A program made the translations under genes and the position numbers. Positions 10,835 to 61,505 of a stretch of 64,000 nucleotides of DNA are shown here, piece after piece; the stretch's first letter is position 1; each line of letters opens with the position of its first letter. The DNA lies in the sequence record MT133560.1; one strand, written 5' to 3'. Below the pieces are notes generated by a model, which worked only from the letters and a program-made list of their open reading frames with translations, did not search any database and was not told the origin of the DNA.

Positions 10835-10843
10835 GTTATAAAA

Positions 10844-11359
10844 ATGTCAGAAAACCGCCCGTTATATATAGCTGCTATTAAAAAAGATCTTTTAAAAACA
10901 ACAGGTTTGTATAAACCTTATAATGATTCACCAATAGCTGTGGTTAGTAATGAAACCAGTAAGTGGCATGTAATGCTAAATATATTACGGCATGGTTGGG
11001 AATGGATTGAAATACCTGAAGGTGAGATTAAACAACCGGAAAATTACCATGACTATGTTATTCTAGCATTAACCACTGTATTAACTGATACTTTAGATTA
11101 TAAAAATGATCCTAACTCTGACAAATATGTCAAGCAAATAATCTGTACTGATGTAGCACTAAAAGTTGAATATGATAAATTAATCAATGTGCTAGAGACA
11201 AGTAACGAGTTAGATTTAGCTGATGAATACACCTTTACTAAACAAGGTAATCTCAGAGGATATTTCCATTATGATGAGTATTATGGTTTAGATGTACTGG
11301 CATGTGCATCTTATGTGATCTGTTCACATATCGAACTAACACCTAGAAATGTTAAATAA
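10844..11359 (+). CDS. hypothetical protein
   Basis: Co-oriented ORF. Confidence 0.8.
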   Translation: MSENRPLYIAAIKKDLLKTTGLYKPYNDSPIAVVSNETSKWHVMLNILRHGWEWIEIPEGEIKQPENYHDYVILALTTVLTDTLDYKNDPNSDKYVKQIICTDVALKVEYDKLINVLETSNELDLADEYTFTKQGNLRGYFHYDEYYGLDVLACASYVICSHIELTPRNVK

Positions 11360-13793: not shown

Positions 13794-14702
13794 ATGCTAA
13801 AGGTAAAATCATTACTCACTGGCCATATTCTTCGAGCTACCTATGATTGGTTTCTTGAGAATAACTTCAGAGATATTCTAATTGTAGCACATACTCAATT
13901 AGTACCTGATTTATCTGAGGTAGCTCTAAAGCATGCGAAAGAAGATCACACTATCACTTTCAATATCCATCCACGCTGTGCAAAGAATTTTTATATCAGT
14001 GACGAATATATCTCTTTCAATGTAACAGTAAATGGAGTTGGGGTCAGTATTAAACTTCCTCTTTATGCAGTATTGGGTGTAGTTACACCTATTGATGATA
14101 ATTCTAACGCATTCTTTGAAATGCCACTAGTAGATAGATATCTCAATGCAGATACTATTCGTGCAACATTAGAAGGAACTGTTAATAATGTAGTTGACAA
14201 AAACCCAGTATTAACTACCGTAGGTAATGTCACTGAGGTTAATTTTAAAAATAAAGCCGATACCACTAATGGTAAGTTAGTTGTAAGGAATACATCTGAG
14301 AATGAGCATGATCAGATGATTGAAAGCGCCATTAACAGAGTAACTGAATTTAGTAATCCAGAATTAGATGCACATATTAGAGTAGCGGTAACTGTAATTA
14401 AACAGAATGCACCAGAATTAATTATGGATTGGTGTGAGCGGGTTATTAATTGTACACGTAATGAAAACTATCAGGATAACATCAATGTACTTATGATGGA
14501 ACTCCTCAGTTACCCTATTTCAAATGTGGTTAGTGAATCAACTGTGGACTCGGGTGATAATACATCTAATTCATTTGACAATGATGTAAATAAGATGGTT
14601 GAGGATTTCAATAATTCTTCCAATTCGCAGGTTATTATTAATAAACCTTCTCGTCCTACCGGTACACCAAAACTCACTGTTATTAAAGGTGGTAAGAAAT
14701 GA
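13794..14702 (+). CDS. sspB: SspB-like ClpXP adaptor protein
   Basis: LLRATYDWFLEN...ITFNIHP...ISFNVTVNGV...LPLYAVLGV (SspB core) and C-terminal RPTGTPKLTVIK resembling the ClpX-binding LRVVK tail. Confidence 0.8.
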   Translation: MLKVKSLLTGHILRATYDWFLENNFRDILIVAHTQLVPDLSEVALKHAKEDHTITFNIHPRCAKNFYISDEYISFNVTVNGVGVSIKLPLYAVLGVVTPIDDNSNAFFEMPLVDRYLNADTIRATLEGTVNNVVDKNPVLTTVGNVTEVNFKNKADTTNGKLVVRNTSENEHDQMIESAINRVTEFSNPELDAHIRVAVTVIKQNAPELIMDWCERVINCTRNENYQDNINVLMMELLSYPISNVVSESTVDSGDNTSNSFDNDVNKMVEDFNNSSNSQVIINKPSRPTGTPKLTVIKGGKK

Positions 14703-15672: not shown

Positions 15673-15736
15673 TAAAAATACTTCTTATAGACTAATAATA
15701 TAGGTAAGATACTAGCCGATTGGTTAGTTGCGCTTA

Positions 15737-15756
15737 GGGAGTCCTTCGGGACTCCC
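15737..15756 (+). terminator. intrinsic terminator
   Basis: GGGAGTCC-TTCG-GGACTCCC. Confidence 0.75.
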
Positions 15757-15777
15757 GTATATCGTCTAGGAGGTTTT

Positions 15778-20664: not shown

Positions 20665-20689
20665 AGAGAGAGGATAAATTCCTCTCTCT
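20665..20689 (+). terminator. intrinsic terminator
   Basis: AGAGAGAGGA-TAAAT-TCCTCTCTCT with CATAAA / TTTATG flanks. Confidence 0.8.
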
Positions 20690-20766
20690 TTTTATGTTGT
20701 TTTATAACTTATATTTAGTCTAAAAGATAATTATGGAATAAACAAAAAATATCCTAACTGATATGT

Positions 20767-32953: not shown

Positions 32954-32980
32954 CCGCTTTCTTTTAAGAAGGTAACTAAT

Positions 32981-47121: not shown

Positions 47122-47535
47122 ATGACTAGTCAACTTATCGTAGTTGATTTACAAAACCCTAGAAATAAACATATATACAGTGAATTAACTCATGAACATC
47201 CTAGAACAATAACATCACATCTAGTTGAAGAATTAGATGATTTTGATGTTCACCAATATTCATACCAAGCGGAGTATAAATCTGGGATTGATCTTAGATT
47301 AATATTCTTTTGGGATGGACCATACACTGAACCAAGAGAAGAAGGTTACGAACCAACTGATCTAGAGAAAAGGTGTGTGAAGTTGTGTAGGCAATATGAG
47401 GCTGCGATTAACGGGCAATTATCTGTAGTTGATCACTCTCGGTTCCGGACGGTGTGTACCTTCAGATCAGATAATAGTTTACCAACAACTTTAGACTGGA
47501 TTCATAAAGAACCCCCATCTAAAGAGGTTATGTAA
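47122..47535 (+). CDS. hypothetical protein
   Basis: ATG 47122, 1 nt after previous stop, preferred to ORF-track start 47011. Confidence 0.75.
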   Translation: MTSQLIVVDLQNPRNKHIYSELTHEHPRTITSHLVEELDDFDVHQYSYQAEYKSGIDLRLIFFWDGPYTEPREEGYEPTDLEKRCVKLCRQYEAAINGQLSVVDHSRFRTVCTFRSDNSLPTTLDWIHKEPPSKEVM

Positions 47536-47564
47536 AAAATAGTAAAAGAAATACACTATTCTAT

Positions 47565-47655
47565 GTAGTTCCTTTACGATTGCTCTTTTATCTTAGTTTC
47601 AGTTTTGCTGAAGAAGTACCAATGAGATACCCTCCCCTGATCGGGGAGGGTTTTT
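47565..47655 (+). ncRNA. candidate late small RNA (about 90 nt)
   Basis: TATGTAG at 47562-68, no ORF with RBS, terminator ACCCTCCCC-TGATC-GGGGAGGGT 47629-47651 + TTTTT. Confidence 0.5.
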
Positions 47656-47676
47656 GACATCTAAGAGGAAAATATA

Positions 47677-48057
47677 ATGTGCAAACAACATCGTGTAGTA
47701 TCTATGAAAGTTACATGCACGCAAGCTCGCTATCCGATCGGTCTGTGCGATCTCGGATTTGATAATGCTGCTGATGCTCGGCAATATCTATTAGATGTCG
47801 TTGAGTACAATATGGATCGTCTCCACCCGCAACATGCTAATACATTCCAGCTACAAAATCTACAAGACGGGTTCGTAGTATCCTACGATATCGAAAAAGA
47901 TGGATCCGTTTATCTTCGGTTAACACTGGCGGCTGTAGCTTATCAATCAATCGATCTTGAGTTGGGGGTTACCGTTAAAGAAAATGAAGGGATCAGTGTT
48001 GTAATCAAAAATTGGATCAATGGTGAGTATACTGCGGGGAACAAATACTTGCAGTAA
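47677..48057 (+). CDS. hypothetical protein
   Basis: GAGGA RBS; sits between two candidate sRNA units. Confidence 0.8.
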   Translation: MCKQHRVVSMKVTCTQARYPIGLCDLGFDNAADARQYLLDVVEYNMDRLHPQHANTFQLQNLQDGFVVSYDIEKDGSVYLRLTLAAVAYQSIDLELGVTVKENEGISVVIKNWINGEYTAGNKYLQ

Positions 48058-48065
48058 TACCATAT

Positions 48066-48188
48066 GTAAAGAATACCCAAATCGGGATCTCCCGGACTAT
48101 CTCCCTTCAGCGTTCCCGTCCGCAAATGAAGGTGCCGCCGAGATCCCACCTATTGATAATGCCCTCCCTTCGGGGAGGGCATTATTTC
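48066..48188 (+). ncRNA. candidate structured late small RNA (about 120 nt) with possible pseudoknot
   Basis: TATGTA at 48063-68; GGGATCTC/GAGATCCC stem (48084-91/48140-47) enclosing interleaved CGGAC/GTCCG and CCTTCA/TGAAGG; terminator 48158-48183. Confidence 0.6.
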
Positions 48189-48223
48189 GCTTAAGCCTAT
48201 TTATTTTATTATAAGGAGTGAAA

Positions 48224-48955
48224 ATGACATATATCGTAAATGATGGTAAAGTCATGATTGCAGACTGCCTATTAATTGAGCGGAATAATGCAACTGATAG
48301 CATTGGGCGACTTCCAGTATTAGATAACGGTTATATTGATCTAACTGCTAAAGCTGAAGGTGTAGATGTATATTACAATGATTGCCACAAGATAATTTTT
48401 CATCCGACAGTTACTTGGCAAGGTAAACGTGTTAAAACTATGGCTTTTGCTGGAACTATAGATAATGTTTATGATCTATTGAATGCCCTTACCGCAGGTG
48501 TTGATTTAGCTGATTGGTTTAAAGTTGAAGTAAATATCTTGCCAGTCATAGAACGCAGGTTGTTTAATGGTAATACTTCTATGATGTTCACTATGGAGAA
48601 TGGTGACATATATACAGTTATTCTTAAAGACATGGGTATCAACATCACCAAGAAAGATTGGGCTCATTTGGGTAGTGGTGTAGATGCAGTTAATAGTGTA
48701 CTTGAGTTTATCCCTAATTGTAATGATAATGGATCAACCAAACTAACTGCACTTGAAGCATTTGCTATTGCATGTGCACATACTACTACTGTAAGTCGTA
48801 AATTTGATTATTACATCCATGCTACAGGTGAGTACAAGCAAAATCAAGAACTATCAACTAAACAACTAAAATGGATACTAGCGCGCATTCAAAAGCGGAT
48901 GGATCTTACCCGCATTTTCAATGACCGCGAATATGCCAATAACATATGGGGTTGA
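48224..48955 (+). CDS. HslV/proteasome-beta-like Ntn hydrolase
   Basis: AGGAG RBS then Met-Thr start (MTYIVNDGKVMIAD), later K, AFAG, LGSG, LTALEAFAIA. Confidence 0.65.
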   Translation: MTYIVNDGKVMIADCLLIERNNATDSIGRLPVLDNGYIDLTAKAEGVDVYYNDCHKIIFHPTVTWQGKRVKTMAFAGTIDNVYDLLNALTAGVDLADWFKVEVNILPVIERRLFNGNTSMMFTMENGDIYTVILKDMGINITKKDWAHLGSGVDAVNSVLEFIPNCNDNGSTKLTALEAFAIACAHTTTVSRKFDYYIHATGEYKQNQELSTKQLKWILARIQKRMDLTRIFNDREYANNIWG

Positions 48956-49476
48956 TTTGTATGAGTAATTCTAATATGGATATGCTATATTACACTAATG
49001 TAAATTGGGAGCAATATTTTCATCATGTGAAACAACGTGCAGATGATACTGTTAAAGTAATGTATAAACCTGAATATGAAGATCTTATTGATGAAGCATG
49101 TAGGCCATTAATTAAATGGTTTAATCAATTTATCAATGTTGCAACTATTTATTGCTGTTCAGGCCATGTTGATGAAGAAACTGGTGGTAGCCCTGGATAC
49201 ATTAGTCTTTTATTTAAAGATACCAATGCAGAGAATTCTGCAATGCGTTTATTGCGTGAAGCAATGTGTAAGGGGCGTGAGTGTAAGATCCCATTCGAAA
49301 TTGAACTGGGGGCTTATTTCGGGCATCTACATGAGACCATTGATCAGAATCACTGGGTCGCCAATCTAGTCATCCGCACCAATAGCTACAAACGTAAAAA
49401 TACGTATGATCGCTATTGGCATCGTCTTTACAATATCATAACAACATGTAATACTGAGGGTTTATACACCGTCTAA
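48946..49476 (+). CDS. Tyw3-like-motif protein (start may be 48961)
   Basis: IDEACRPLIKWFN...ATIYCCSGH...GYI. Confidence 0.55.
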   Translation: MGLICMSNSNMDMLYYTNVNWEQYFHHVKQRADDTVKVMYKPEYEDLIDEACRPLIKWFNQFINVATIYCCSGHVDEETGGSPGYISLLFKDTNAENSAMRLLREAMCKGRECKIPFEIELGAYFGHLHETIDQNHWVANLVIRTNSYKRKNTYDRYWHRLYNIITTCNTEGLYTV

Positions 49477-49494
49477 AAAATCTGAGATAATTTA

Positions 49495-49644
49495 ATGAAT
49501 GATATTAAAAATACATTATTAGTTAGATTAAAGAGGAAACAAAAAGCTAAGCGTATAGATAAATTACAAAGACTAGGTTTATGGTTTATTCTATTGCTAT
49601 GTGTATCTAATCTATTTGTCCAATTAATAAAAGGTATATTCTAA
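49495..49644 (+). CDS. 49-aa membrane microprotein
   Basis: Basic N-half then LGLWFILLLCVSNLFVQLI; abuts next ATG. Confidence 0.55.
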   Translation: MNDIKNTLLVRLKRKQKAKRIDKLQRLGLWFILLLCVSNLFVQLIKGIF

Positions 49645-50325
49645 ATGGCAGAAAAGCTCAGTTTTGCTGATATATTTAAGATGGCTAAAGAGGAAAATGT
49701 TAAGCTTGAATTGCATTGTCTAATTGGTACTCGGCCAGTTAGGGGTCTTATTAAAAGTTTAAACTTTAATCCAATCAGACCTGATGTATACGAATCTGTT
49801 AATTTATATGTAGATGTATTTTCTAAAGTAGTGGAGACTAAAATAGATCCATCAAGTACTACTGCTGATTATGGTTGCTGGAGAATGACACCAGAAACTA
49901 AGAATTATGTAGATAGTAAATATAACTTACCAGAAAAAATGGATATCACTAATCCAGATATCGTTAGGAGTAATATTAATTATTACCTCAGTTTACCTAC
50001 TCAGGAACGTATTGCGTTATTTAATAAAATAAATAATCCTAATGTCATTGAGGCGATAAACAAAGAATGGTCTAAAATGGTTGTAGAGTATTATCAATCT
50101 GAGATCGATTCATTTATTGGATTAATTGATTTCGATCATGTCCTTATCAATAAGTTCATGGTATTTAACTGGATGGATGATCTGTTTGAATATGCTTTAA
50201 ATATCCCATTAAAACAAACCAATACAGTAAATGAAGGTACCTGTTGCTTACTGGTTCACAAAGATAAAAAGGCAACATATACCCATTTTACTGATATTAA
50301 AAATCTTATCAAAGTAAGTGTATAA
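49645..50325 (+). CDS. hypothetical protein
   Basis: AAGGT RBS; last plus-strand gene of the block. Confidence 0.8.
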   Translation: MAEKLSFADIFKMAKEENVKLELHCLIGTRPVRGLIKSLNFNPIRPDVYESVNLYVDVFSKVVETKIDPSSTTADYGCWRMTPETKNYVDSKYNLPEKMDITNPDIVRSNINYYLSLPTQERIALFNKINNPNVIEAINKEWSKMVVEYYQSEIDSFIGLIDFDHVLINKFMVFNWMDDLFEYALNIPLKQTNTVNEGTCCLLVHKDKKATYTHFTDIKNLIKVSV

Positions 50326-50337
50326 TTACGGCATAAA

Positions 50338-50359
50338 CCCCTCTCCACATGGAGAGGGG
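50338..50359. terminator. bidirectional terminator at strand convergence
   Basis: CCCCTCTCC-ACAT-GGAGAGGGG between convergent genes. Confidence 0.85.
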
Positions 50360-50387
50360 CTATGTCTTTATTTTCTTTTATTTAAAC

Positions 50388-50777
50388 TCACTTAGAATAA
50401 TCTTCTACTGGAATATCATCCAGCCAATCATTAAGTAGTTTAAATTGATGAGGGTGCTGCATCTTAGTAACTTTACCATACTTAACACTAACTGCTTTAC
50501 CACTCGATACAGCAAGATCAACTAGTTTCTTTTCGTATGCATTAAACTCATCATACCACCGAGTATGAATAAGTTTTGCTAGGCGATCGTAAGCCGTCTT
50601 TCGATAATGATCTTCTAGTTCGCGACGTTGTTCATCAAGTAGTTCTTTTTGACGTTGTTCTTGCTGACGCTTTTCTTCTTCCTGTTTCTCTTTCTCTAGT
50701 CGTTTCTTCTCAGCAAAATATGATAGAACCGGTAGTTTGAAAAGCAGGCTTAGAAGTAGTTGAAAGAATTGTTTCAT
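50388..50777 (-). CDS. coiled-coil protein with hydrophobic N-terminus
   Basis: MKQFFQLLLSLLFKLPVLSYF then E/K/Q/R-rich helix; GAGGA RBS before ATG 50777; TATGTA at 50839-34. Confidence 0.75.
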   Translation of the reverse strand: MKQFFQLLLSLLFKLPVLSYFAEKKRLEKEKQEEEKRQQEQRQKELLDEQRRELEDHYRKTAYDRLAKLIHTRWYDEFNAYEKKLVDLAVSSGKAVSVKYGKVTKMQHPHQFKLLNDWLDDIPVEDYSK

Positions 50778-50857
50778 TAGTATTTCCTCAGTTTGATTAA
50801 ATAGATAATTTACAAATGGCAATCCGCCTAGTTACATACTAGATAGCTGTAAGTATT

Positions 50858-51268
50858 TTAATCCGTTACAATATCTGGATAACGTTCATCAATTAATGAT
50901 TTCCTATATGCAAACTCACGCACCTCTACTTCTAACTTTTCTTTAGTTGCATCTGTAGCACCGATCACAATAATTGAATCATTATTAATTGATAACTCTA
51001 CGTTATTATCTTTTCCAAATACTAATTTAAAAACAGTATTTAATTCATCTAATTGATCTTGAATGGTTACTGTATCATCATGGATTGCCCTAGACGGTTC
51101 CTCTAATAGGCCCTCTAGAACTTTATAAGACTTTATAAAAAGAGTATCATTAAAATCTTCTTTTAACCATGCTAATTCAAGTGTATATAAATCAACCACT
51201 CTATTAATATTTGAAGTAGTTATATCTGTTTTCCATTCATAACCTAGATAGTTAGTTTCATTACTCAT
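50858..51268 (-). CDS. hypothetical acidic protein
   Basis: AGGAG RBS, TATGTA upstream (51292-87). Confidence 0.8.
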   Translation of the reverse strand: MSNETNYLGYEWKTDITTSNINRVVDLYTLELAWLKEDFNDTLFIKSYKVLEGLLEEPSRAIHDDTVTIQDQLDELNTVFKLVFGKDNNVELSINNDSIIVIGATDATKEKLEVEVREFAYRKSLIDERYPDIVTD

Positions 51269-51310
51269 TATAAACTCCTTTGATTAATACATATTAAATA
51301 ATCTGGAGTA

Positions 51311-51487
51311 TTATTTCTTTGTAATGCGATAACCAACTGACCATAAATCTACACGGACGAAACCTTTTTCCTCATGTTGACCGTATACACATACGCGTAA
51401 CATTCGATTGCCTGGCTTCATATCAATTCGTGTTATCTCAAATTTATTAGTAATGTATTCTTGGATGATAAATAATAGATGCCTCAT
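51311..51487 (-). CDS. 58-aa hypothetical protein
   Basis: MRHLLFIIQEYITNKFEITRIDMKPGNRMLRVCVYGQHEEKGFVRVDLWSVGYRITKK; CAGGA RBS. Confidence 0.65.
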   Translation of the reverse strand: MRHLLFIIQEYITNKFEITRIDMKPGNRMLRVCVYGQHEEKGFVRVDLWSVGYRITKK

Positions 51488-51518
51488 TTTATATTTTCCT
51501 GATTAATGACAAACATAA

Positions 51519-51538
51519 GCCCCTCCATATGGAGGGGC
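51519..51538 (-). terminator. intrinsic terminator after tRNA-Thr
   Basis: GCCCCTCC-ATAT-GGAGGGGC. Confidence 0.8.
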
Positions 51539-51616
51539 AATATGATTTACTGAGTCTTTCACGTTCAATCCCATCCTAACTAATATATTTAAGAATAGTT
51601 TAAACCTCAGTAAATT

Positions 51617-51693
51617 TGGTGCCGCCACTCCGAATCGAACGGAGGACCTACGCATTACAAGTGCGTTGCTCTACCTAGCTGAGCTATAGCGGC
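51617..51693 (-). tRNA. tRNA-Thr(TGT)
   Basis: 77-nt cloverleaf GCCGCTATAGCTCAG...CTTGTAA...TTCGATT...GGCGGCACCA, CCA encoded. Confidence 0.97.
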
Positions 51694-51701
51694 GGAATCT
51701 T

Positions 51702-51708
51702 CTACATA
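51702..51708 (-). promoter_or_regulatory. late-type promoter TATGTAG for tRNA-Thr
   Basis: G of TATG lies 12 nt before the tRNA 5' end. Confidence 0.7.
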
Positions 51709-51754
51709 TAGTGTATATGAAAGTATTATTTTATTATAATAAATAGAGTTATAT

Positions 51755-51790
51755 TCAAACTTATTTAAACAGTATATTATTAACTTGATA
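51755..51790 (+). promoter_or_regulatory. early-type promoter (class B variant)
   Basis: TATTCAAACTTATTTAAACAGTATATTATT resembles 21362-21390. Confidence 0.65.
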
Positions 51791-51836
51791 TTACTAAATG
51801 TAATATTTTCTATTAATTGTAAATAGGATACTAAAT

Positions 51837-51974
51837 ATGAATATTGATCCAAAAACTTTTGGTATTATTGTTAGCGCCACTATTGGCACCGTAGGTGCTC
51901 TTATTCTTACGTATGGTATCGTGAGAGCAGTGCGTGGAAATAATAAACCTGATGTAAAAGATGTAGCAGAGTAA
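51837..51974 (+). CDS. 45-aa membrane microprotein, lone plus-strand unit
   Basis: TAGGA RBS; MNIDPKTFGIIVSATIGTVGALILTYGIVRAVRGNNKPDVKDVAE; own promoter and terminator. Confidence 0.75.
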   Translation: MNIDPKTFGIIVSATIGTVGALILTYGIVRAVRGNNKPDVKDVAE

Positions 51975-51982
51975 GATAACAT

Positions 51983-52009
51983 AGAGCTAGCCCATTAGGG
52001 GCTAGCTCT
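51983..52009. terminator. bidirectional terminator
   Basis: AGAGCTAGCCC-ATTAG-GGGCTAGCTCT. Confidence 0.85.
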
Positions 52010-52032
52010 TATATTTATTTTTTTTATTTGTT

Positions 52033-52701
52033 TTAACTTGGGGTACTATAATAAATAAATTTAGTTAATTCGGCTTCTTGCTCTTTGATTATATTATTTT
52101 TTGTTTGCTTAACATTAATATAAGATTCAATAGATAGCCAACGCTGATCATATTCGGCTAAGTCATTGAATTCAATTTTCTCGAATCGCCATGACTGAAC
52201 AGTGGTTCTAATCAGATTACCTGATTTATTAACAATATAACCTTGCATTGTCTCAAAAAAGTCATCTGCTTTACTAATAACAATAATTAGATATACATCA
52301 TCTGTGTTTTTAGTATGCATTGATTTTAATTTATAGACACGTGGGTTAAAAGAATCAATATCTTTATAATGTTCTTTGATTTCTAGAACAGCATCAATCA
52401 TCATCTTGGCGCTATTTTGAATACCGTTATTAAGTAGATATTCATTAAGTTCTTTTAATGAGTCATCACTCAATGATGCTTCGATATGTTCTTCACTTAT
52501 AGGGTAGTGATAAACTAATTTATTAATAGCTGAATTAACAACATTTAGTTTATCAACATCATAAACTTCTAATGTTTGCTTGCCAACTTTTATTTTTAAT
52601 CCTTTATTTGAATCATTAATAAAGTTGTCTAGATCTACTTCAGTAAAATGAAAAGCCATTTTAATCACCTTTATGTTTTCCGTAGTGAAGTGAATAAACA
52701 C
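52033..52701 (-). CDS. hypothetical protein (start probably ATG 52659)
   Basis: AAGGTG RBS before MAFHF. Confidence 0.8.
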   Translation of the reverse strand: MFIHFTTENIKVIKMAFHFTEVDLDNFINDSNKGLKIKVGKQTLEVYDVDKLNVVNSAINKLVYHYPISEEHIEASLSDDSLKELNEYLLNNGIQNSAKMMIDAVLEIKEHYKDIDSFNPRVYKLKSMHTKNTDDVYLIIVISKADDFFETMQGYIVNKSGNLIRTTVQSWRFEKIEFNDLAEYDQRWLSIESYINVKQTKNNIIKEQEAELTKFIYYSTPS

Positions 52702-52797
52702 ACACCCGGTTTCTGGTTAGGATAAAGTATGGTTAATCCATACATAATAAAATACGCAAGAGTATTAAATTAAAAAAACTAATATAACCTGATAAAA

Positions 52798-52818
52798 ACC
52801 CTCCCATAATGGGAGGGT
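52798..52818 (-). terminator. intrinsic terminator
   Basis: ACCCTCCC-ATAAT-GGGAGGGT (plus-strand reading). Confidence 0.8.
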
Positions 52819-52823
52819 TATAA

Positions 52824-53382
52824 TTAGCTTTTAAGAACAGGTTTTAATATTAGATAAATATAGCAGTTAGCAGTAACTGTGGTTTCAACTACTTTACCAT
52901 CACTATCGATTGCTAAAAGATTAGATGGATTATTAGTGGATACAGTTGATGATAGTATTTTATACGAATCTGCTAATCGGATACTAATTAAAGGGCGTTG
53001 AGTACGTTTAACTCGACTACAGAAGAATGTTAAAAGGTATTCAGTACACTCTTCTATAGTAGGTATACTAACCTCCCAAGTAACATCCTGCATTTCGATA
53101 TTACGACCTTGTTGAACAGGGCCTCCTAAAGCAGTTATCATTGCACTTGGTAACTTATCAGTCATGTCACCGGAAGACGCCATTAAACCAGCTTGATATA
53201 TAGTTACAGCACTAACTAAATATATTGACGCTGTATCGAAAAGAGCTATGTATTTATCGCCAATCCCATATGTTACTGGCACCGCATCTAAATCGGCAAA
53301 CTTAATAGGTTTACCAGGAGTAGCCGCAATTAATGAATGGGTTGGTTTATTTTCTGGAACATATGTTTTAGTTAAATGACAT
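52824..53382 (-). CDS. probable virion-associated protein; 5' end appears frameshifted
   Basis: Frame open 38 codons upstream of GTG 53282; ATG 53382 joins it if one T is removed (MSLTKTYVPENK). Confidence 0.6.
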
Positions 53383-53464
53383 ACACAAAGCCATTTTTAT
53401 GACTTCGCGTATGCGTGGCACGTATCTATTAAGATGATACAACTTCATATCATAACAACATAAA

Positions 53465-53483
53465 GCCCTCCGTGATGGAGGGC
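53465..53483 (-). terminator. intrinsic terminator
   Basis: GCCCTCC-GTGAT-GGAGGGC with A/T tracts on both sides. Confidence 0.8.
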
Positions 53484-53503
53484 TTTTATTTTATTTTTAT
53501 ACT

Positions 53504-54028
53504 TTAACTAAAACGAACTACAATTACACTAGTACCAAAAGTATCAGCTACCCACTGATTAAATTCTTTATCAGTAATACCTCGTAAATTCAGATTATAA
53601 GATGCGTTATCTACAAGTATATAGCGGATATCTGAAAGTAAATTTTCATTAAAGTCTTTCTGGATCGTTGATAGTCCAGATTTATGGATATAGCTACGTA
53701 GTTTAAATGTAGTTAAATATGGAATAATGTTATCTGGTGTTTTGGATAGTTTATCTTGAGCACCACGTCGAATTCTTTCGTCGGTGAATACTGCCAAACA
53801 TTCACCAGGGTAGCGTTTTGAAAATTCCATTAATGCTGTAGTACTACCAGATTGACGACCAATAAAAAACCCTACTGTTCTATGATCACGTATAGTGATA
53901 TGACTGACATCATTAAGATGATAATGCATCCCATACTTATTCCAATTCTCATTAGTTTTATATATCAATGCATCCAGGATAGCCTGGTAATCAACAATAG
54001 TTTTTACAAACTGATTTGTGTTATTCAT
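53504..54028 (-). CDS. small P-loop-like protein
   Basis: GFFIGRQSGSTT (Walker-A-like, Lys absent) and YILVDNAS (Walker-B-like). Confidence 0.65.
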   Translation of the reverse strand: MNNTNQFVKTIVDYQAILDALIYKTNENWNKYGMHYHLNDVSHITIRDHRTVGFFIGRQSGSTTALMEFSKRYPGECLAVFTDERIRRGAQDKLSKTPDNIIPYLTTFKLRSYIHKSGLSTIQKDFNENLLSDIRYILVDNASYNLNLRGITDKEFNQWVADTFGTSVIVVRFS

Positions 54029-54174
54029 TATAGAAGTTCCTTTATTACAATGTAGTATATAACCTTTATTAAATTAGGTTATATACCGGCTATGGAAAAG
54101 GCCTCGTCACCTTCCCTTCACCTATATTAAATATCAATAGTGGTTATAAAGAACGAGATACACTCATTGACATA

Positions 54175-54285
54175 ATATAGCCAGGGGTGGCAAACCCCTG
54201 GCATTCAGACACACTCTATAATTAAATCTACCACCGAGTGTATTTAGTGGATAGCTTTAGGATTATCTAGATAAAGTAATCCTAC
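54175..54285 (-). ncRNA. candidate late small RNA (about 110 nt)
   Basis: TATGTAG 54288-82; 5' hairpin TAGGATTA/TAATCCTA; ACACTC/GAGTGT stem; 3' hairpin GCCAGGGG/CCCCTGGC 54202-54180; no ORF. Confidence 0.5.
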
Positions 54286-54319
54286 ATAATATCATCGCAC
54301 TAGTATTTTTATCTTTAGT

Positions 54320-55327
54320 TTAATCGAGAACTAATGGGGCTACTTTAACTTGATATATACCAGTTAATAATTGGCTTTTCAACATATATGCTCCACCACC
54401 AACCGCCATTTTAGATCCACCTACAATGATCATGCTATTATCCGGACCTTTAGCTATAGATGAAATATTAAGGAATCCGATACCTAGTTCAAATGGTTCA
54501 GCCCATTTCCGGCGCCTAATATTAAAACGTTGTGCAAACATTTTAGTTACACCGCCGACATCAACAGCGTTAAGGTAATTAAAATAGTCCCCATCTACAT
54601 AACCATTACCTTGCCAGATTGTTCCTTTATCAGCAGGTATAATCATCCAAGGTGTTTGCTCCCATATTAAGGTAGTTGCATTATATCGATAAACTTCAAG
54701 ATTAGGTATGTTCTTTGTATTATCCCAACCACCAAAATGGTAAAAGTAACCATTATAAAAGAATAACTGTTGACCTGAACGAGCACCACCTGAATAGTCT
54801 TGCCCGCTAAGCCAAGACTTACTTGATGGTTTTAATCGCATTGCGTTTACGCCAATTGGGTTAACGCATAGAATAAGATCATTACCATCTGATGCGGAGG
54901 CTGTGCCCCAAAGTGGTACGGGACCACTATATCGCTCAACCCTATTGCCTGTAGCTATATCAAAATGTTGTATAAAGTTAGATGTTCCCGTACCACCATT
55001 ACCAGCCGAGTTCCATCCAGTAATACCGCCATAAACAATAAAGTTATTCTTATGTAATGTCCCAAATCCTAAAGATACCCCTGGTAAGAATGTTCCAGAA
55101 GCAGTTGCACCTATATCGGCAAATGGCGATATGGTAAAACGTCTGAACACAGTTGCAGCTGTTTGTCCTTCAGTATGATGACCAGATCCAACATACAGTG
55201 TATTTCCATCCACATATGACATTGTACCAGCTAACGCTACAGGTAGATCACCTAATTTAATAATTTCATTAAATCCAACCAAGGGTAACTCTTCGCCTAT
55301 ATCTGGCGATAATAGTAATTCAAACAT
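54320..55327 (-). CDS. Kelch-repeat beta-propeller protein, probably virion/tail associated
   Basis: Repeated LYVGSG, FIVYGG, FYHFGGWD, IIVGG with downstream Y/W (VYRYN...WE). Confidence 0.8.
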   Translation of the reverse strand: MFELLLSPDIGEELPLVGFNEIIKLGDLPVALAGTMSYVDGNTLYVGSGHHTEGQTAATVFRRFTISPFADIGATASGTFLPGVSLGFGTLHKNNFIVYGGITGWNSAGNGGTGTSNFIQHFDIATGNRVERYSGPVPLWGTASASDGNDLILCVNPIGVNAMRLKPSSKSWLSGQDYSGGARSGQQLFFYNGYFYHFGGWDNTKNIPNLEVYRYNATTLIWEQTPWMIIPADKGTIWQGNGYVDGDYFNYLNAVDVGGVTKMFAQRFNIRRRKWAEPFELGIGFLNISSIAKGPDNSMIIVGGSKMAVGGGAYMLKSQLLTGIYQVKVAPLVLD

Positions 55328-55381
55328 GAGTGTGCTCTCAAGTAAATCATTTTAATTCATAAGATAACCCATGGCAACATA

Positions 55382-55405
55382 AAAGAGTAGCCGAAGCTAC
55401 TCTTT
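55382..55405 (-). terminator. intrinsic terminator after tRNA-Asn
   Basis: AAAGAGTAGC-TTCG-GCTACTCTTT (minus strand). Confidence 0.85.
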
Positions 55406-55411
55406 AGAATA

Positions 55412-55487
<76 letters not shown>

Positions 55488-55493
55488 ATTAAA

Positions 55494-55570
55494 TGGCGCG
55501 CCCAAGGGGACTCGAACCCCTGACCACCCGCGTGACAGGCGGGTATTCTAACCAACTGAACTATGAGCGC
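55494..55570 (-). tRNA. tRNA-Asp(GTC)
   Basis: 77-nt cloverleaf GCGCTCATAGTTCAG...CTGTCAC...GCCA. Confidence 0.97.
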
Positions 55571-55590
55571 AAACGTATGGACATGACTTC

Positions 55591-55597
55591 CTACATA
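55591..55597 (-). promoter_or_regulatory. late-type promoter TATGTAG for tRNA-Asp/Asn
   Basis: G of TATG lies 24 nt before the tRNA-Asp 5' end. Confidence 0.7.
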
Positions 55598-55622
55598 GTA
55601 TTACATAACCAGTAATATTTTA

Positions 55623-55970
55623 TTACGGGCGATCAGTCCAGTGCTTGAAATAGTTACCATCCTTGGGACGATCGTACTTAGCAAGAATATTTTTAAGTTC
55701 TTCGCCGGACAACTTAATACTATCGCCTACTGGGCTATCCAGTTCAGGGCAAGGTTCAGTTTTACGTGTAATGATTAAATTATCAGTCCCATCTTTGAAG
55801 ATAAAGATAAACTGCGTTTCATTAGCACTAATCTTTTTCTTAACGCAATGCTTTACTTCTGGATGTTTCTTGTGGATCGTTACAAAAGATTCAACAAGAG
55901 TTAGCTTTATAAACTCAGGGCTAATAAATGTGAAATATACAGCGCTCTGCGTTGGGGTTAGATGATCCAT
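55623..55970 (-). CDS. hypothetical protein
   Basis: GGAG RBS; co-oriented. Confidence 0.8.
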   Translation of the reverse strand: MDHLTPTQSAVYFTFISPEFIKLTLVESFVTIHKKHPEVKHCVKKKISANETQFIFIFKDGTDNLIITRKTEPCPELDSPVGDSIKLSGEELKNILAKYDRPKDGNYFKHWTDRP

Positions 55971-55972
55971 AT

Positions 55973-56278
55973 TTACTCCGTATGTTTGAGATAGGCTTTA
56001 ACTGCTTTAAGACCTTTATTAAAGAACATAGCTTCAACATAAGTAATGTTACTTACATCCTCGCCGATAAGTTCCCATTTGATGCAACGTGTAACAGCGT
56101 TGATTGTAATATCTAATCCGTTTGGGAATAGGGTTACTTCATCGGTCAGGTGAATCCAATCGGGAGCCTTCGCTCCATTACGTAAACGGGGACTAAAAGT
56201 AAGATTATAAAGTGTTTGTAATGGTTGTCTCAATAGTTCTTTTTGTTCTTGATGTTCCATGTATTTTCCTAGAGACAT
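55973..56278 (-). CDS. hypothetical protein (start may be 56260)
   Basis: Co-oriented ORF. Confidence 0.75.
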   Translation of the reverse strand: MSLGKYMEHQEQKELLRQPLQTLYNLTFSPRLRNGAKAPDWIHLTDEVTLFPNGLDITINAVTRCIKWELIGEDVSNITYVEAMFFNKGLKAVKAYLKHTE

Positions 56279-56526
56279 TTAAAAATATAAATAGAATGGT
56301 TATCTCTTTCGGTTATCTTTAGAGTATTCTCATTTCGAATAACTTCAAGAGACTTGTATTTATGTTCCAGAATATCCAGATGAGAAATACACTGTTCCCT
56401 ATTTTCAAATAGGATATTACTTTCATTAGTCGAAATGAAACCAAATAATCCAACTTTGATAGATAATACCAACATTATTACTGTATTCATGTTTTCCTCA
56501 ATGAGACAGTATAAAACCTCCCCCAA
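56269..56526 (-). CDS. small exported protein with F-x5-C...C pattern (start probably 56493)
   Basis: MNTVIMLVLSIKVGLFGF...LFENREQC...FKCL. Confidence 0.65.
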   Translation of the reverse strand: MGEVLYCLIEENMNTVIMLVLSIKVGLFGFISTNESNILFENREQCISHLDILEHKYKSLEVIRNENTLKITERDNHSIYIFKCL

Positions 56527-56534
56527 GTGGGAGG
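56517..56534 (-). terminator. hairpin after tRNA-CAT, probable terminator
   Basis: CCTCCC-CCAAGT-GGGAGG (plus-strand reading). Confidence 0.7.
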
Positions 56535-56542
56535 CTAGTATA

Positions 56543-56619
56543 TGGTGGGCCCAGCAGGACTTGAACCTGCGACCAAGCGATTATGAGTCGCCTGCTCTAA
56601 CCAACTGAGCTATAGGCCC
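56543..56619 (-). tRNA. tRNA with CAT anticodon, Ile2-type body (commonly annotated Met)
   Basis: GGGCCTATAGCTCAGTTGGTTAGAGCAGGCGACTCATAATCGCTTGGTCGCAGGTTCAAGTCCTGCTGGGCCCACCA; closely resembles E. coli ileX. Confidence 0.95.
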
Positions 56620-56626
56620 TTTTTAT

Positions 56627-56920
56627 TTATTCTGGTAAGAATGTTCCATCTTTTTGACGGACTAATACACCTGACCATTTGAATGTATTTGTATCACTAG
56701 CAGGGCACTCTCTAATTACATTGGTTCTAAATGTGCCATGTGGATAGGTTACAGTGAATGTAATATGGTTATTACAAACATGTAATACAGAAGACTTTGC
56801 TTCTGTTAGATAGTGTAAGCCTTGAGCTAATTGAATATTAGTTAATTCAGGGTCACTAAGAATAGCGTAAAGAGCTGTTCCTATAATTTGATGTTCCCAT
56901 GATATCCATTTATTATCCAT
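56627..56920 (-). CDS. hypothetical protein between tRNAs
   Basis: TAGGA RBS. Confidence 0.75.
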   Translation of the reverse strand: MDNKWISWEHQIIGTALYAILSDPELTNIQLAQGLHYLTEAKSSVLHVCNNHITFTVTYPHGTFRTNVIRECPASDTNTFKWSGVLVRQKDGTFLPE

Positions 56921-56941
56921 CCTATTTACCTATTATTAAAA

Positions 56942-57017
56942 TGGTCGGAGTGGGGAGACTCGAACTCCCGACATCCTGCTCCCAAAGCAGGCGCGCTACC
57001 AACTGCGCTACACTCCG
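56942..57017 (-). tRNA. tRNA-Pro(TGG)
   Basis: 76-nt cloverleaf CGGAGTGTAGCGCAG...CTTTGGG...ACCA. Confidence 0.97.
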
Positions 57018-57026
57018 TATTTAAAT

Positions 57027-57111
57027 TGGTGCCCGAAGTCGGATTCGAACCGACAAGACCGTAGCCGGAAGATTTTAAGTCTTCTGTGTTTACCAATTTC
57101 ACCATTCGGGC
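57027..57111 (-). tRNA. tRNA-Leu(TAA)
   Basis: 85-nt with long variable arm, GCCCGAATGGTG...ACTTAAA...ACCA. Confidence 0.97.
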
Positions 57112-57123
57112 ATTGTGCTTCAA

Positions 57124-57129
57124 TACATA
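57124..57129 (-). promoter_or_regulatory. late-type promoter TATGTA for tRNA-Leu/Pro
   Basis: G of TATG lies 15 nt before the tRNA-Leu 5' end. Confidence 0.65.
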
Positions 57130-57169
57130 ACATGTATTGCTAGGTATTTTATTACAACTTATTTTAAAT

Positions 57170-57622
57170 TCAACGTGGCCATTGTAAAGAAGTTATCTTA
57201 TTACCATTAATGTAGACATCGGTCACTTCGCACCAATCATTAATTCTGTGTTCAATAATTGGAACATCATTTCGGCCAGCCACTCCAATCATATTCCATT
57301 TAACATAAATATTCATTAGATCAATTGTTAATTTCTCTTTTATGAGTTTAGGAGAAATTAATTTAATATTATTAATGTTAAAGAAGTAATTATTAACTTC
57401 TTCTAAATATTCATTAGTATTAGTAGTACTAACTTTGCCTTCATGTTCAAGTGAGGATGGTTTATTCTGATTTACAATATTGCTCACTAGACTTCTTAAA
57501 ACGGCACTTGCCCTACCAGCTTCGCGTCTTTTATACTTATCATAGTCTTTTACATTAGCTGCAATTTTATCAAATTCTTTTTGGGCATAGATTAGCCCTG
57601 GTAAAAGTTCATTTTTGATCAT
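57170..57622 (-). CDS. hypothetical protein
   Basis: Co-oriented; TATGTA at 57666-61. Confidence 0.8.
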   Translation of the reverse strand: MIKNELLPGLIYAQKEFDKIAANVKDYDKYKRREAGRASAVLRSLVSNIVNQNKPSSLEHEGKVSTTNTNEYLEEVNNYFFNINNIKLISPKLIKEKLTIDLMNIYVKWNMIGVAGRNDVPIIEHRINDWCEVTDVYINGNKITSLQWPR

Positions 57623-57677
57623 TTTATAATTACTCTATGTTGTTTATACATATTTTAATATACATACGTAAAAACAA

Positions 57678-57820
57678 AATATAAAGCCTCCCCGAAGGGA
57701 GGCGATATATCGTCATTAATGCCCAGCAAAGAGTTTTACTCTCTGGGAGCCAGTTGGAAGGGGGACTGGCTCCGATCTATTATGACTAATGTAGAAACAA
57801 GGGGGAGGGATTATTTCTAC
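57678..57820 (-). ncRNA. candidate structured late small RNA (about 140 nt) with C/U-rich loops
   Basis: TATGTAG 57823-17; hairpin GTAGAAA/TTTCTAC; junction with GGAGCCAGT/ACTGGCTCC and CCCAG/CTGGG; terminator GCCTCCC-TTCG-GGGAGGC 57703-57686 + TTTAT. Confidence 0.65.
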
Positions 57821-57835
57821 ATAATATTAGATACA

Positions 57836-59776
57836 TTACTGGTAGTTTTCATTACCCATTGCTAACCTACCTTTTATAGACCGATCTACCCATTTTGCGG
57901 CGGCCTCCATGATATCAATGAATGAGTGGTATTGCCGCATTTTATTAACTTCCATCACATCATCATCAATCCCAGGGCCAAAGCATGCGAATAACAAATC
58001 ATTCCAATCATAGTAATCGATACCAGCTATTGGACTAGGGTTATCCAACATATCGTAGATTAGTCCTTCCAGTGGATCTGGTAAATCAGGGAACTTGAAG
58101 CTAAGAGTTATCTGACGTTCCAATGCCGATATAATTAAGTTCATGGCCTTAGCTGCTTCTTCTTCAGTAAGAGCTTTGAGTTTACTATCAGTAGATGGAT
58201 ATTTCGCGACCACGGTGCGAGGTGAATTATAGGTACCCTTACCTGTAATAGTACCGGCTGGCCATTTAACACTAGTCTTGAATCCAGCACGTGCCTTGTC
58301 TACGATAGCCTTTGCTTCTTTGTATACGTTAGCGTCTAGGTTATGTGCATTCTTAATGAGTAGATCCAATGCAGGTTTAGTCTTCTGCCTGTAAGACTCC
58401 ATTTCGCGATTAGACTTTTCTTCGAGTTTGAAGAATGGTTCTACTGCACGAATGGCATCCTCGATACTGACTTTACCATTAATACTCAGTACGTTAGCTA
58501 TACCATTACTATTGATATCGCCAGTAACGAATACCTGCTTATTAAGCCATTGTGGATTGCCAAATGTAGATTCTAGTTGTTCCAGAAATCCTCTTGCACT
58601 GGACGATGAACGCCAGATACGTTTCTGATCACCTCGATTAGAAATGCCAAGAACTTTTTTGATTGAATCGATAAGACCTTCATTTGAGACTTGTATAAAA
58701 CCGGGAGTATTAATGATGGACTTCTCTACATACCCGCCACGAATAACCCGATTTATAAAACCATTAAGACCACTACCAGTTTCGGCCATATCTTTCATGA
58801 TTTCTATATTCGTTTCACCGGCACTTTGGGCATTGTATAAATAATAAGAACCATCTTTGAATTTCAGTATAATCCAGTCATCCCCAGTTAGATATGAATC
58901 AATATTACTATCATTCATACTTTGATATTTAATGAATTCTGGATTAGTACTTAATACTTCTTCAATGAATTCTTCTAATGCCGCAGAATTATTAATAGCA
59001 TCAACCGGTAGAATTTCACCATCAATGGGTTCAGTAGTTGGACCAGTAACAATGGCAGGTAACGGATCCTCCTCTACAATAACAGTTTCTTCCACTGGTA
59101 GAGCACCGCAAGATAAATCAATTAGTTTATTAAAACTACTAATGATCTCACCAAGTGCTACAAGAACTGCTGGCTGTTCAACTTGTTCAACTTTAGCAAT
59201 ACCAGTTTCTGTAAATTCTTCAGTAATTCGGTTATAGACTTCCACTAATTGATTAGTAAGCTCTGCTACTTTTGGCAGAGTCTGCTTAGACAGAGGTTCA
59301 ACTACAGTTGTATCTGCTTCAACAAAAATAGAGTCATCTTCTTCTAAACGGCTAGTATTAGCTGAGCCAGCTGTGAAGTTATAAGGCATATCTTGAATTA
59401 CTTCATTAATTTCAGATGCCTCCATATCTTCATTTAGACGACCACTATAAGTACGCATCATACCTTCTGCTTCTTTAATAGTGGAATGCGCTAAGCGTCC
59501 CCAATCACCACGCATAATACCGCGCTCGGTAAGACCGCGTGCAGCTGAACCAAGATCAATAGGTTCTTCAATAAATGATTGTTCTTCAACCCACTCCTCA
59601 TTACTGTAACATTCTTTTAGAATGGTTTTAAATTTAGTACTAAAGGGTTGTAGAATCTTTTTATCTACTTGTTCAACATTTGTTTTAAAGTGTTCTAGAC
59701 TTGGTGTAGCTTTTGAAGATACTTTTTCAGTACCGCTATATAGCGTACGGTTTAGGAAGTTTAGCATTTTATTCAT
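57836..59776 (-). CDS. gp303-like internal head protein, probably proteolytically processed, with KTSC-like domain
   Basis: Position before glycine zipper/nrdB/nrdA; S/A/G-x-E sites (AALE, VSNE-GLIDSIKK); IDSYLTGDDWIILKFKDGSYYLY...MKDMAETGSGLNGFIN. Confidence 0.75.
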   Translation of the reverse strand: MNKMLNFLNRTLYSGTEKVSSKATPSLEHFKTNVEQVDKKILQPFSTKFKTILKECYSNEEWVEEQSFIEEPIDLGSAARGLTERGIMRGDWGRLAHSTIKEAEGMMRTYSGRLNEDMEASEINEVIQDMPYNFTAGSANTSRLEEDDSIFVEADTTVVEPLSKQTLPKVAELTNQLVEVYNRITEEFTETGIAKVEQVEQPAVLVALGEIISSFNKLIDLSCGALPVEETVIVEEDPLPAIVTGPTTEPIDGEILPVDAINNSAALEEFIEEVLSTNPEFIKYQSMNDSNIDSYLTGDDWIILKFKDGSYYLYNAQSAGETNIEIMKDMAETGSGLNGFINRVIRGGYVEKSIINTPGFIQVSNEGLIDSIKKVLGISNRGDQKRIWRSSSSARGFLEQLESTFGNPQWLNKQVFVTGDINSNGIANVLSINGKVSIEDAIRAVEPFFKLEEKSNREMESYRQKTKPALDLLIKNAHNLDANVYKEAKAIVDKARAGFKTSVKWPAGTITGKGTYNSPRTVVAKYPSTDSKLKALTEEEAAKAMNLIISALERQITLSFKFPDLPDPLEGLIYDMLDNPSPIAGIDYYDWNDLLFACFGPGIDDDVMEVNKMRQYHSFIDIMEAAAKWVDRSIKGRLAMGNENYQ

Positions 59777-61435: not shown

Positions 61436-61505
61436 ATCAGTTCCTTTACAATTTAAAAATATTTCTTACAATAAATAATAGAGGTTAGTATAAATTGGGA
61501 ATAAC

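Follow-up and report, generated by a model that had tools for sequence, protein, structure and literature searches.

Four intergenic segments in the genome of Pseudomonas phage fnug (MT133560.1) are copies of small non-coding RNAs (ncRNAs) that have already been mapped in phage phiKZ, and they are not new. They lie in a stretch of 64,000 nucleotides (nt), referred to here as the window, and are named by the position of their start motif: U1 (47562, +), U2 (48063, +), U3 (54288, -) and U4 (57823, -). We put the probability at about 0.8 that these units are fnug versions of the phiKZ short transcripts and have a dual output. In each of them, as comparison with phiKZ suggests, a promoter for a phage RNA polymerase would be nested after the stop codon of the upstream gene but ahead of the intrinsic terminator of that operon. 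Transcripts ending at the terminator would be RNAs of 90-142 nt, and others would read through into the downstream mRNA (for U4 including the cluster of transfer RNA (tRNA) genes), as shown in phiKZ. The two outputs of a unit would be a leader whose leaky terminator sets downstream expression and a small non-coding RNA.

The region 47400-58000 of the window is 100% identical, over its full length, to positions 262299-272899 of the fnug record (megablast), so that the window represents the final 64 kb of a Phikzvirus genome; fnug positions are obtained by adding 214899 to the window position. The same region matches phiKZ with 96% identity over 86% of its length. Gene maps were taken from the fnug and phiKZ records. 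Slices containing the units align by BLAST with phiKZ at the same positions and between the same flanking genes, with identities of 100% for U1, 99.3% for U2, 86.3% for U3 and 99.4% for U4. Counted from the mapped phiKZ start to the mapped end, the units measure 90, 121, 111 and 142 nt, respectively. The predicted RNAs and their terminators are as follows.

47566-47655 (+): U1 RNA, 90 nt; unpaired AU-rich 5' part, one small hairpin, then the terminator
47629-47651 (+): U1 terminator hairpin and T run; phiKZ T118, which also ends the upstream operon (TU194)
48067-48187 (+): U2 RNA, 121 nt; long irregular hairpin at nt 18-81, then the terminator
48157-48184 (+): U2 terminator; phiKZ T119
54174-54284 (-): U3 RNA, 111 nt; two hairpins before the terminator
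54202-54180 (-): U3 terminator; phiKZ T126
57678-57819 (-): U4 RNA, 142 nt, orthologue of phiKZ TU237; three hairpins before the terminator
57703-57686 (-): U4 terminator; phiKZ T131

The start and end sites of phiKZ transcripts were mapped by ONT-cappable-seq (Putzeys et al. 2024, microLife uqae002; preprint 10.1101/2023.10.13.562163). Table S7 of that study lists 17 ncRNA candidates derived from 5' untranslated regions (5'UTRs), four of which are the orthologues of U1-U4.

NC_004629 262671-262760 (+): U1 orthologue, ending at T118; downstream gene PHIKZ288; listed as 89 nt; no extra validation
NC_004629 263172-263292 (+): U2 orthologue, ending at T119; downstream gene PHIKZ289; listed as 120 nt; no extra validation
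NC_004629 270595-270485 (-): U3 orthologue, ending at T126; downstream gene PHIKZ297; listed as 110 nt; validated by northern blot and Grad-seq
NC_004629 274148-274007 (-): U4 orthologue, ending at T131; downstream gene PHIKZ302; listed as 141 nt; validated by northern blot (their Fig. 6B)

An earlier sequence-only reading of the window had proposed a set of phage small RNAs that should be visible as discrete transcripts with these ends. Such transcripts exist in phiKZ: ends from ONT-cappable-seq are available for all four, northern blots for the PHIKZ297 and PHIKZ302 leaders and Grad-seq data for the PHIKZ297 leader. The U3 orthologue was first named 3'UTR_PHIKZ298, as an RNA of ~100 nt between PHIKZ298 and PHIKZ297 (Gerovac et al. 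2021, mBio, Grad-seq), and later 5'UTR_PHIKZ297. The published class is defined by a phage promoter at the start, a terminator that lies within the 5'UTR and under 250 nt from the start, and no open reading frame (ORF) of at least 10 codons preceded by a Shine-Dalgarno (SD) sequence; U1-U4 agree with this definition in position, promoter motif, terminator and absence of an SD-led ORF. The short RNAs are called abundant for the two illustrated leaders, those of PHIKZ221 and PHIKZ302 (Putzeys et al. 2024). The same authors use the term 'conditional termination', the short terminated species being predominant at most such leader terminators, and quote more than 90% termination for the PHIKZ221 leader.

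All four units carry TATGT at the position of a mapped phiKZ start, and initiation at these sites in fnug is predicted. The start motifs of the units and of the tRNA transcription units are listed below, with the promoter types given in Table S3 of Putzeys et al. (2024).

47562-47568 (+): U1 start motif TATGTAG; orthologue of phiKZ P129 (start site 262671), early
48045-48069 (+): U2 promoter, with ATAC box, 14 nt and TATGTAA (48063-48069); orthologue of phiKZ P130, middle
54282-54306 (-): U3 promoter, with ATAC box, 14 nt and TATGTAG (54288-54282); orthologue of phiKZ P138, middle
57817-57823 (-): U4 start motif TATGTAG; orthologue of phiKZ P144, late
57648-57652 (-): second start motif, 3' of the U4 terminator; orthologue of phiKZ P143, the promoter of PHIKZ302 itself
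51702-51726 (-): tRNA-Thr promoter, with ATAC box, 14 nt and TATGTAG; orthologue of phiKZ P134, middle
55591-55597 (-): start motif TATGTAG of the tRNA-Asp/Asn promoter; orthologue of phiKZ P140, middle
57123-57147 (-): tRNA-Leu/Pro promoter, with ATAC box, 14 nt and TATGTAT; orthologue of phiKZ P141, middle

The sequence-only reading had pointed out that TATGTA(G) heads the tRNA units 12-24 nt upstream of the tRNA (at 51708, 55597 and 57129) and that the same motif heads the four intergenic segments. All of these positions are exact, and the start motif is indeed common to the four units and the tRNA promoters; the G of its first four letters lies 12 nt upstream of tRNA-Thr, 24 nt upstream of tRNA-Asp and 15 nt upstream of tRNA-Leu. 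The description of a dedicated late set did not hold, since the phiKZ types are early for U1, middle for U2, U3 and the three tRNA promoters, and late for U4. The tRNA promoters P134, P140 and P141, typed middle, are also seen early in infection by dRNA-seq (Putzeys et al. 2024, Table S3). An ATAC box is present 14 nt before the motif in U2, U3, tRNA-Thr and tRNA-Leu, and is replaced by TTAC for tRNA-Asp; U1 and U4 lack the box, which in the window is confined to these five promoters. Over the window as a whole, TATGTAG shows no enrichment (19 copies found, 14.8 expected). Nine of the 19 copies are intergenic, although intergenic DNA makes up 11.8% of the window (binomial 1e-4); 1.4 are expected from dinucleotide shuffles of the intergenic DNA, and none of 300 shuffles reaches nine. 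The signal of the motif is in its placement and not in its abundance.

The window encodes six tRNAs, all on the minus strand (ARAGORN, Rfam). One of them, tRNA-Met (56544-56619, -), is flanked by two small ORFs and lacks its own start motif, so that it must come from read-through of upstream promoters, that of U4 included. A terminator hairpin (56536-56515, -) follows directly after it.

For every intergenic TATGT site in the window, we determined how far away the next gene and the first same-strand hairpin resembling a terminator lie. Just four of the sites in the 64 kb that are co-directional with the next gene have a strong same-strand terminator ahead of that gene, and these are U1-U4. In all four units, GC-rich hairpins with T-rich tails end 86-134 nt past the start motif, and the terminator-type hairpin that had been placed ~90-140 nt downstream was borne out, at 90-142 nt. 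In phiKZ, T118, T119, T126 and T131 end not only the short units but also the upstream-operon transcription units TU194, TU195, TU216 and TU238 (tables of Putzeys et al. 2024). The transcription units at these loci are TU194-198, TU213-216 and TU233-238; the upstream operons are PHIKZ287/288 (TU194/TU195), PHIKZ298 (TU216) and PHIKZ303/304 (TU238/TU239). Read-through from the unit promoters yields TU197 (PHIKZ288), TU213 (PHIKZ297, t02 and 296) and, from the U4 promoter, TU233-236 (PHIKZ302 and the tRNA cluster) (Putzeys et al. 2024). The anatomy of the window at the shared terminators is the same. Because the terminators are shared and the promoters are read through, each RNA forms the 3' end of one mRNA as well as the 5' leader of the following one, and the term 'orphan' given to these units earlier has to be dropped: their terminators also end upstream operons, and the same promoters yield read-through mRNAs in phiKZ.

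Most intergenic terminators of the window follow one stem design, with a CCCTCCC arm, a 4-nt loop and a GGGAGGG arm, and many of them can be read on both strands; examples are 20665-20697 (+), 51538-51513 (-), 53486-53458 (-), 54202-54170 (-) and 55402-55377 (-). At about 10 places, the T-rich tail of the terminator runs into TATGT, forming a compact terminator-then-promoter cassette; U1-U4 have the reverse order.

The window holds more than four units of the published phiKZ class. A fifth (8354-8426, +) starts with the same TATGTAG upstream of the PHIKZ221 homologue; its terminator is weak and was missed by the strict terminator scan. The phiKZ orthologue is ~70 nt long, ends at T102 and has been validated by northern blot (Putzeys et al. 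2024). The orthologue of the PHIKZ234 leader (58 nt in phiKZ) is found at 15702-15760 (+) and starts at TATAGG instead of TATGT. A further orthologue, that of the PHIKZ263 leader (139 nt), ends near 32957 (+) and overlaps the end of the PHIKZ262 coding sequence (CDS).

The four units had also been described as folding into GC-rich stems. Their GC content is 41% (U1), 53% (U2), 39% (U3) and 46% (U4), against 31% for intergenic DNA, and the folding z-scores of the full RNAs relative to shuffled sequences are -2.6, -6.4, -4.3 and -5.5, respectively. When the terminator is removed, the values become +0.4, -3.6, -2.5 and -4.1; the full RNAs thus fold far better than shuffled sequences, but the body of U1 is not unusually structured, whereas those of U2, U3 and U4 are. 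The absence of a credible ORF was confirmed. ORFs of 11-28 codons start inside each RNA, and no SD-like sequence was found upstream of any ORF of at least 10 codons starting in U1-U4; every such ORF runs past the terminator, and none of the four short RNAs contains a stop codon for it. A cmscan search of Rfam 15 with E values up to 5 returned only chance-level matches far below the gathering scores (Phe_leader, 22 versus 55 bits; ar14, 20 versus 59). Short CDSs are annotated as 'hypothetical protein' over U2, next to U3 and over U4 in ANB1 (at 921-1115, 10827-10916 and 14493-14591 of the locus compared), as well as in PhiPizzaParty, the KEN phages and several other records; they look like non-coding RNA regions that have been over-annotated.

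A sensitive blastn search of 50,697 phage records detected the units in 46-47 records, all of them Phikzvirus, in agreement with the expected conservation in related phages. No copy was found in these records outside Phikzvirus; in PhiPA3, PA1C and similar phages, only the generic terminator hairpin gave short matches. Three protein-anchored scans of IMG/VR for distant relatives retrieved only phage PA7. Twenty-six metagenome contigs matching a degenerate 20-mer of U4 hairpin 2 were discarded as G+C-rich chance matches with no further similarity.

The identity of U1 is 99% or higher in all 46 records, and 12 genomes carry it unchanged. The most divergent well-covered genome, that of T2P, was compared with fnug: 90 of 90 positions are identical in U1, 85 of 88 in the body of U2 and 141 of 142 in U4. 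The flanking genes are far more diverged (PHIKZ288, 82.9%; PHIKZ289, 78.8%; PHIKZ302, 77.5%), with 62-68% identity at third codon positions. At the flanking rate, ~18 changes would be expected in the U2 body instead of the three observed (p about 6e-6). These three changes are all at unpaired positions, and T2P has kept the body while its U2 terminator was swapped for a different hairpin.

U3 evolves at about the rate of its neighbours, with changes that respect the fold. In hairpin 1, which differs in sequence from that of phiKZ with pairing kept, two pairs are changed on both sides (G-C to A-U, U-A to G-U) and a third is kept by a one-base register shift. Five one-sided changes are all wobble-compatible, 98.4% of the pair cells are standard, against 32-49% in slid controls, and the covariation score is reached by 3 of 500 shuffles. 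In U4, 99.5% of the pair cells are standard: a single pair has changed on both sides (A-U to G-C), three one-sided changes are wobble-compatible, and one terminal pair is broken. Divergent variants fold alike. From these patterns, we infer that the RNA bodies are under purifying selection beyond the promoter and the terminator. Because the bodies appear to be selected and stem pairing is preserved, the short RNAs, or the same sequences within longer mRNAs, probably act as RNA.

Several points weigh against this reading. The RNA ends in fnug are transferred by homology, the transcript data being those of phiKZ. The gene upstream of U1 is also 97% identical in T2P, which makes the conservation of U1 less telling. 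Covariation over Phikzvirus genomes had been proposed as a check, and the compensatory or wobble-compatible stem changes speak for the folds, but the statistics are weak because each RNA has only four to seven distinct variants, and the covariation alignments 5-6 distinct rows, all from one genus, so that the numbers are suggestive only; moreover, related sequences can beat shuffles in such a test without any structure. Conservation of the intergenic cassettes could partly reflect roles at the DNA level (promoter, terminator or junctions of mosaic recombination). Finally, folding of the nascent RNAs revealed no mutually exclusive antiterminator and terminator structures in any unit. U1 and U2 leave the 5' arm of the terminator free, U3 and U4 engage it only weakly, and any 'conditional' termination would thus operate without a visible RNA switch.

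As to the mode of action of the RNAs, our leading guess, held tentatively, is that exposed pyrimidine-rich segments (the 5' end of U1, the two loops of U4) would pair with purine-rich regions of ribosome-binding sites (RBSs), either in cis within the read-through mRNA (U1 with the SD sequence of PHIKZ288) or in trans. The C-rich tracts of U4 and U2 and the candidate target of U1 are listed below.

57799-57810 (-): U4 C-rich tract 1, TCCCTCCCCCTT; 10-nt apical loop of hairpin 1
57756-57765 (-): U4 C-rich tract 2, TCCCCCTTCC; 10-nt apical loop of hairpin 2
48100-48108 (+): U2 C/U tract; half unpaired, half inside a stem
61437-61451 (-): candidate pairing site of the U1 5' end, in the RBS region of the ribonucleotide reductase beta gene (PHIKZ305 homologue), to be taken as no more than a lead

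The C/U tracts quoted in the sequence-only reading are all present. The U2 tract and the two U4 tracts are the only C-rich pyrimidine tracts on the transcribed strand of the intergenic DNA of the window outside terminator stems; the TTCCTTT of U1 is weak by the same measure. The two tracts of U4 form 10-nt apical loops both in the minimum-energy and in the centroid fold of three variants; they cap stable hairpins in fnug and in the most divergent variant, and the only changes in the tracts among variants are C to T. The 5' end of U1 is unpaired, and its nt 2-16 are predicted to form 15 contiguous pairs (-20.8 kcal/mol) across the SD sequence of the ribonucleotide reductase beta gene. This energy is matched by 3 of 400 shuffled seeds and by 8 of 800 natural intergenic 20-mers (p ~0.01 before correction); five seeds were tested, and the match is borderline after correction. 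Perfect 11-nt complements are found for 5% of natural intergenic 20-mers. Since U1 and its candidate site are both invariant or nearly so across the genus, covariation between the two partners cannot show. The U1 5' end also has a 10-nt perfect match in the RBS region of the PHIKZ297 homologue, and in the minimum-energy fold of the read-through leader, its UUCCUUU closes onto the SD sequence of PHIKZ288 (unpaired probability 0.29).

Against the pairing guess, U3 contains no pyrimidine tract, the mean predicted pairing of the U4 and U2 tracts with the RBS regions of the window is no better than that of shuffled sequences, and the U3 orthologue sediments in light fractions 3-4, away from the ribosomal fractions (Gerovac et al. 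2021). There is some sequence support for RBS pairing for U4 and U1, little for U2 and none for U3. Anti-SD pairing is plausible for U1 and U4. For the decoy and anti-defence functions suggested by the sequence-only reading, the analysis turned up no evidence either way.

Two side observations concern these tracts. The PHIKZ302 leader is given in the preprint's Table S7 as + strand sequence, which is the reverse complement of the transcript, and the folding energy printed for it would then be that of the antisense; the PHIKZ297 entry is printed in the RNA sense. The C-rich loops of U4 are invisible in that table because the opposite strand is printed. A purine tract, GAAGGGAAGG, at 54119-54110 on the transcribed strand of the PHIKZ297 leader is complementary over 6-7 nt to the U2 and U4 C/U tracts.

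Among the accounts of what the units are for, trans-acting anti-SD regulation, in which the short RNAs would block ribosome binding on phage or host mRNAs through their C/U segments, is possible if doubtful. The conserved 10-nt loops of U4 and the singular position of the U4 and U2 tracts in the intergenic DNA speak for it, and U1 resembles a classic base-pairing small RNA (sRNA), with its free 5' end, AU-rich body and terminator with a U tail, facing a near-invariant partner over the ribonucleotide reductase beta SD sequence. The match of U1, borderline once five tested seeds are corrected for, the frequency of 11-nt complements, the average performance of the U4 and U2 tracts, the half-paired state of the latter and the lack of a tract in U3 speak against it; moreover, no function for these RNAs is reported in the papers of 2025-2026 that were consulted, where phage small ncRNAs figure at most as unexplored or with 'potential roles'. 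The specific version, in which U1 and U4 would be trans-acting phage riboregulators, U1 tuning or shutting translation of ribonucleotide reductase beta (and of the PHIKZ297 homologue) and the U4 loops acting on G-rich SD sequences of phage or host mRNAs, is unlikely; if true, a jumbo phage would have a layer of post-transcriptional control of its own. It is distinctly unlikely that the short RNAs are by-products without a function of their own, arising where a promoter happens to lie upstream of the terminator of the previous operon, so that only the promoter, the terminator and the read-through mRNA would matter. Such an origin fits the sharing of terminators with upstream operons, the read-through mRNAs of phiKZ and the unstructured body of U1, and the order of the elements, the reverse of the usual and often fused terminator-then-promoter order of the phage, could be an accident of compaction. 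It does not fit the conservation of the U2 and U4 bodies in T2P, far above that of the flanking genes, the retention of the U2 body beside a replaced terminator, or the compensatory and wobble-compatible stem changes. Nor does it fit the PHIKZ302 promoter, which sits downstream of the U4 terminator, so that U4 is not needed for the expression of that gene.

A role as a cis-acting leader, in which the stem-loops would modify the phage RNA polymerase (antitermination) or bind a protein and so set read-through, mRNA stability or translation, is very unlikely. The stem-loops do lie directly after the start site and ahead of the terminators, transcripts from the U4 promoter can extend for ~2.4 kb, past several mapped termination sites, and reach the tRNA cluster (TU233-236), and the U1 tract can close onto the PHIKZ288 SD sequence; conditional termination is described for phiKZ (Putzeys et al. 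2024), and antitermination was suspected in the 201phi2-1 study. Yet the short terminated species predominate at most such leaders, with the PHIKZ221 leader above 90%, and any antitermination would therefore be weak; no alternative fold captures the 5' arm of the terminator in U1 or U2, and no Rfam leader or riboswitch family matches. A riboswitch or attenuator leader was rejected for lack of an antiterminator fold and of any Rfam leader or riboswitch match. That the units are genes for micro-proteins missed by annotation is hardly credible. ORFs do start in each RNA, and several GenBank records annotate short CDSs over U2, U3 and U4. Small-protein coding was rejected because these ORFs have no SD sequence and run through the hairpin past the mapped 3' end with no stop inside the short RNA. 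Both source papers screened for SD-led ORFs of this kind and found none (Putzeys et al. 2024; Gerovac et al. 2021).

The dual-output units can be compared with several known systems. They share with the 5'UTR-derived ncRNAs of phiKZ the loci, the flanking genes, the start motif and the terminators, at 86-100% identity; they differ in belonging to the isolate fnug, where they are known from sequence alone, and in hairpin 1 of U3. Type I sRNAs derived from 3'UTRs have a promoter of their own and use the terminator of the mRNA, DapZ and MicL being the textbook cases. As in these, the promoters of the fnug units are located where the upstream gene ends or beyond it, the terminator is shared and the sequence is also the 3' end of a longer mRNA. 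Unlike them, the fnug units are also the 5' leaders of the next gene and are predicted to be transcribed by phage RNA polymerases, and there is no sequence relation (no Rfam match).

Riboswitch-derived small RNAs are examples of sRNAs formed by premature termination in a 5'UTR. The phiKZ units behave alike, a terminator in the 5'UTR giving mainly a short RNA and, to a lesser extent, full-length mRNA (Putzeys et al. 2024). An sRNA derived from the rhlI 5'UTR has been reported in P. aeruginosa. The fnug units differ from such cases in having no visible switch fold and no Rfam leader match. The sRNAs of the RsaE/RoxS type of Firmicutes bind SD regions through C-rich loops. Of the four units, only U4 resembles them, with two unpaired C-rich apical loops on stable hairpins; the U2 tract is partly exposed, and U1 and U3 have no such loop. 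No homology was detected (cmscan, E up to 5), and the host lineage differs.

The tRNA cluster of phage T4 includes the stable RNAs C and D. In PAK_P3, ncRNA1 and ncRNA2 near tRNA genes arise by processing of 3'UTRs and lack individual start sites (Putzeys et al. 2024), and one of the sRNAs of 201phi2-1 lies directly upstream of a tRNA (201phi2-1 study). Like these RNAs beside tRNA genes, which are abundant, small and structured, U3 and U4 flank the fnug tRNA cluster, and the U4 read-through carries the tRNAs; however, no sequence similarity to U1-U4 was found outside Phikzvirus.

The existence, ends and non-coding nature of these RNAs being already published, the present analysis adds nothing as a discovery, and the residual interest is in their function. 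To our knowledge, a function has been assigned to very few small RNAs of virulent phages. The comparative data help in choosing among the 17 candidates of phiKZ, and point to U4, U2 and U1. U2 and U4 are islands of conservation between fast-evolving genes, U4 has twin C-rich loops, and U1 is invariant across the 46 records, with one candidate target.

The neighbourhood of U3 is variable. A hypervariable block (52660-53503) separates the PHIKZ294 and PHIKZ297 homologues; it contains one gene of 459 nt in fnug and KTN4, PHIKZ295, PHIKZ296 (HNH endonuclease) and an extra tRNA-Asn in phiKZ, and ~4.5 kb with four genes, which some records annotate as virion structural proteins, in OMKO1, T2P, ANB1, SL2 and PA7 (Y12). 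The PHIKZ297 homologue (CDS 53504-54028, -) has two alleles that are ~70% identical. The leader of 145 nt (54029-54173, -) between the U3 terminator and this gene is present only in the 11 records with the fnug-type allele, and a further TATGT is located at the tail of the U3 terminator (54174).

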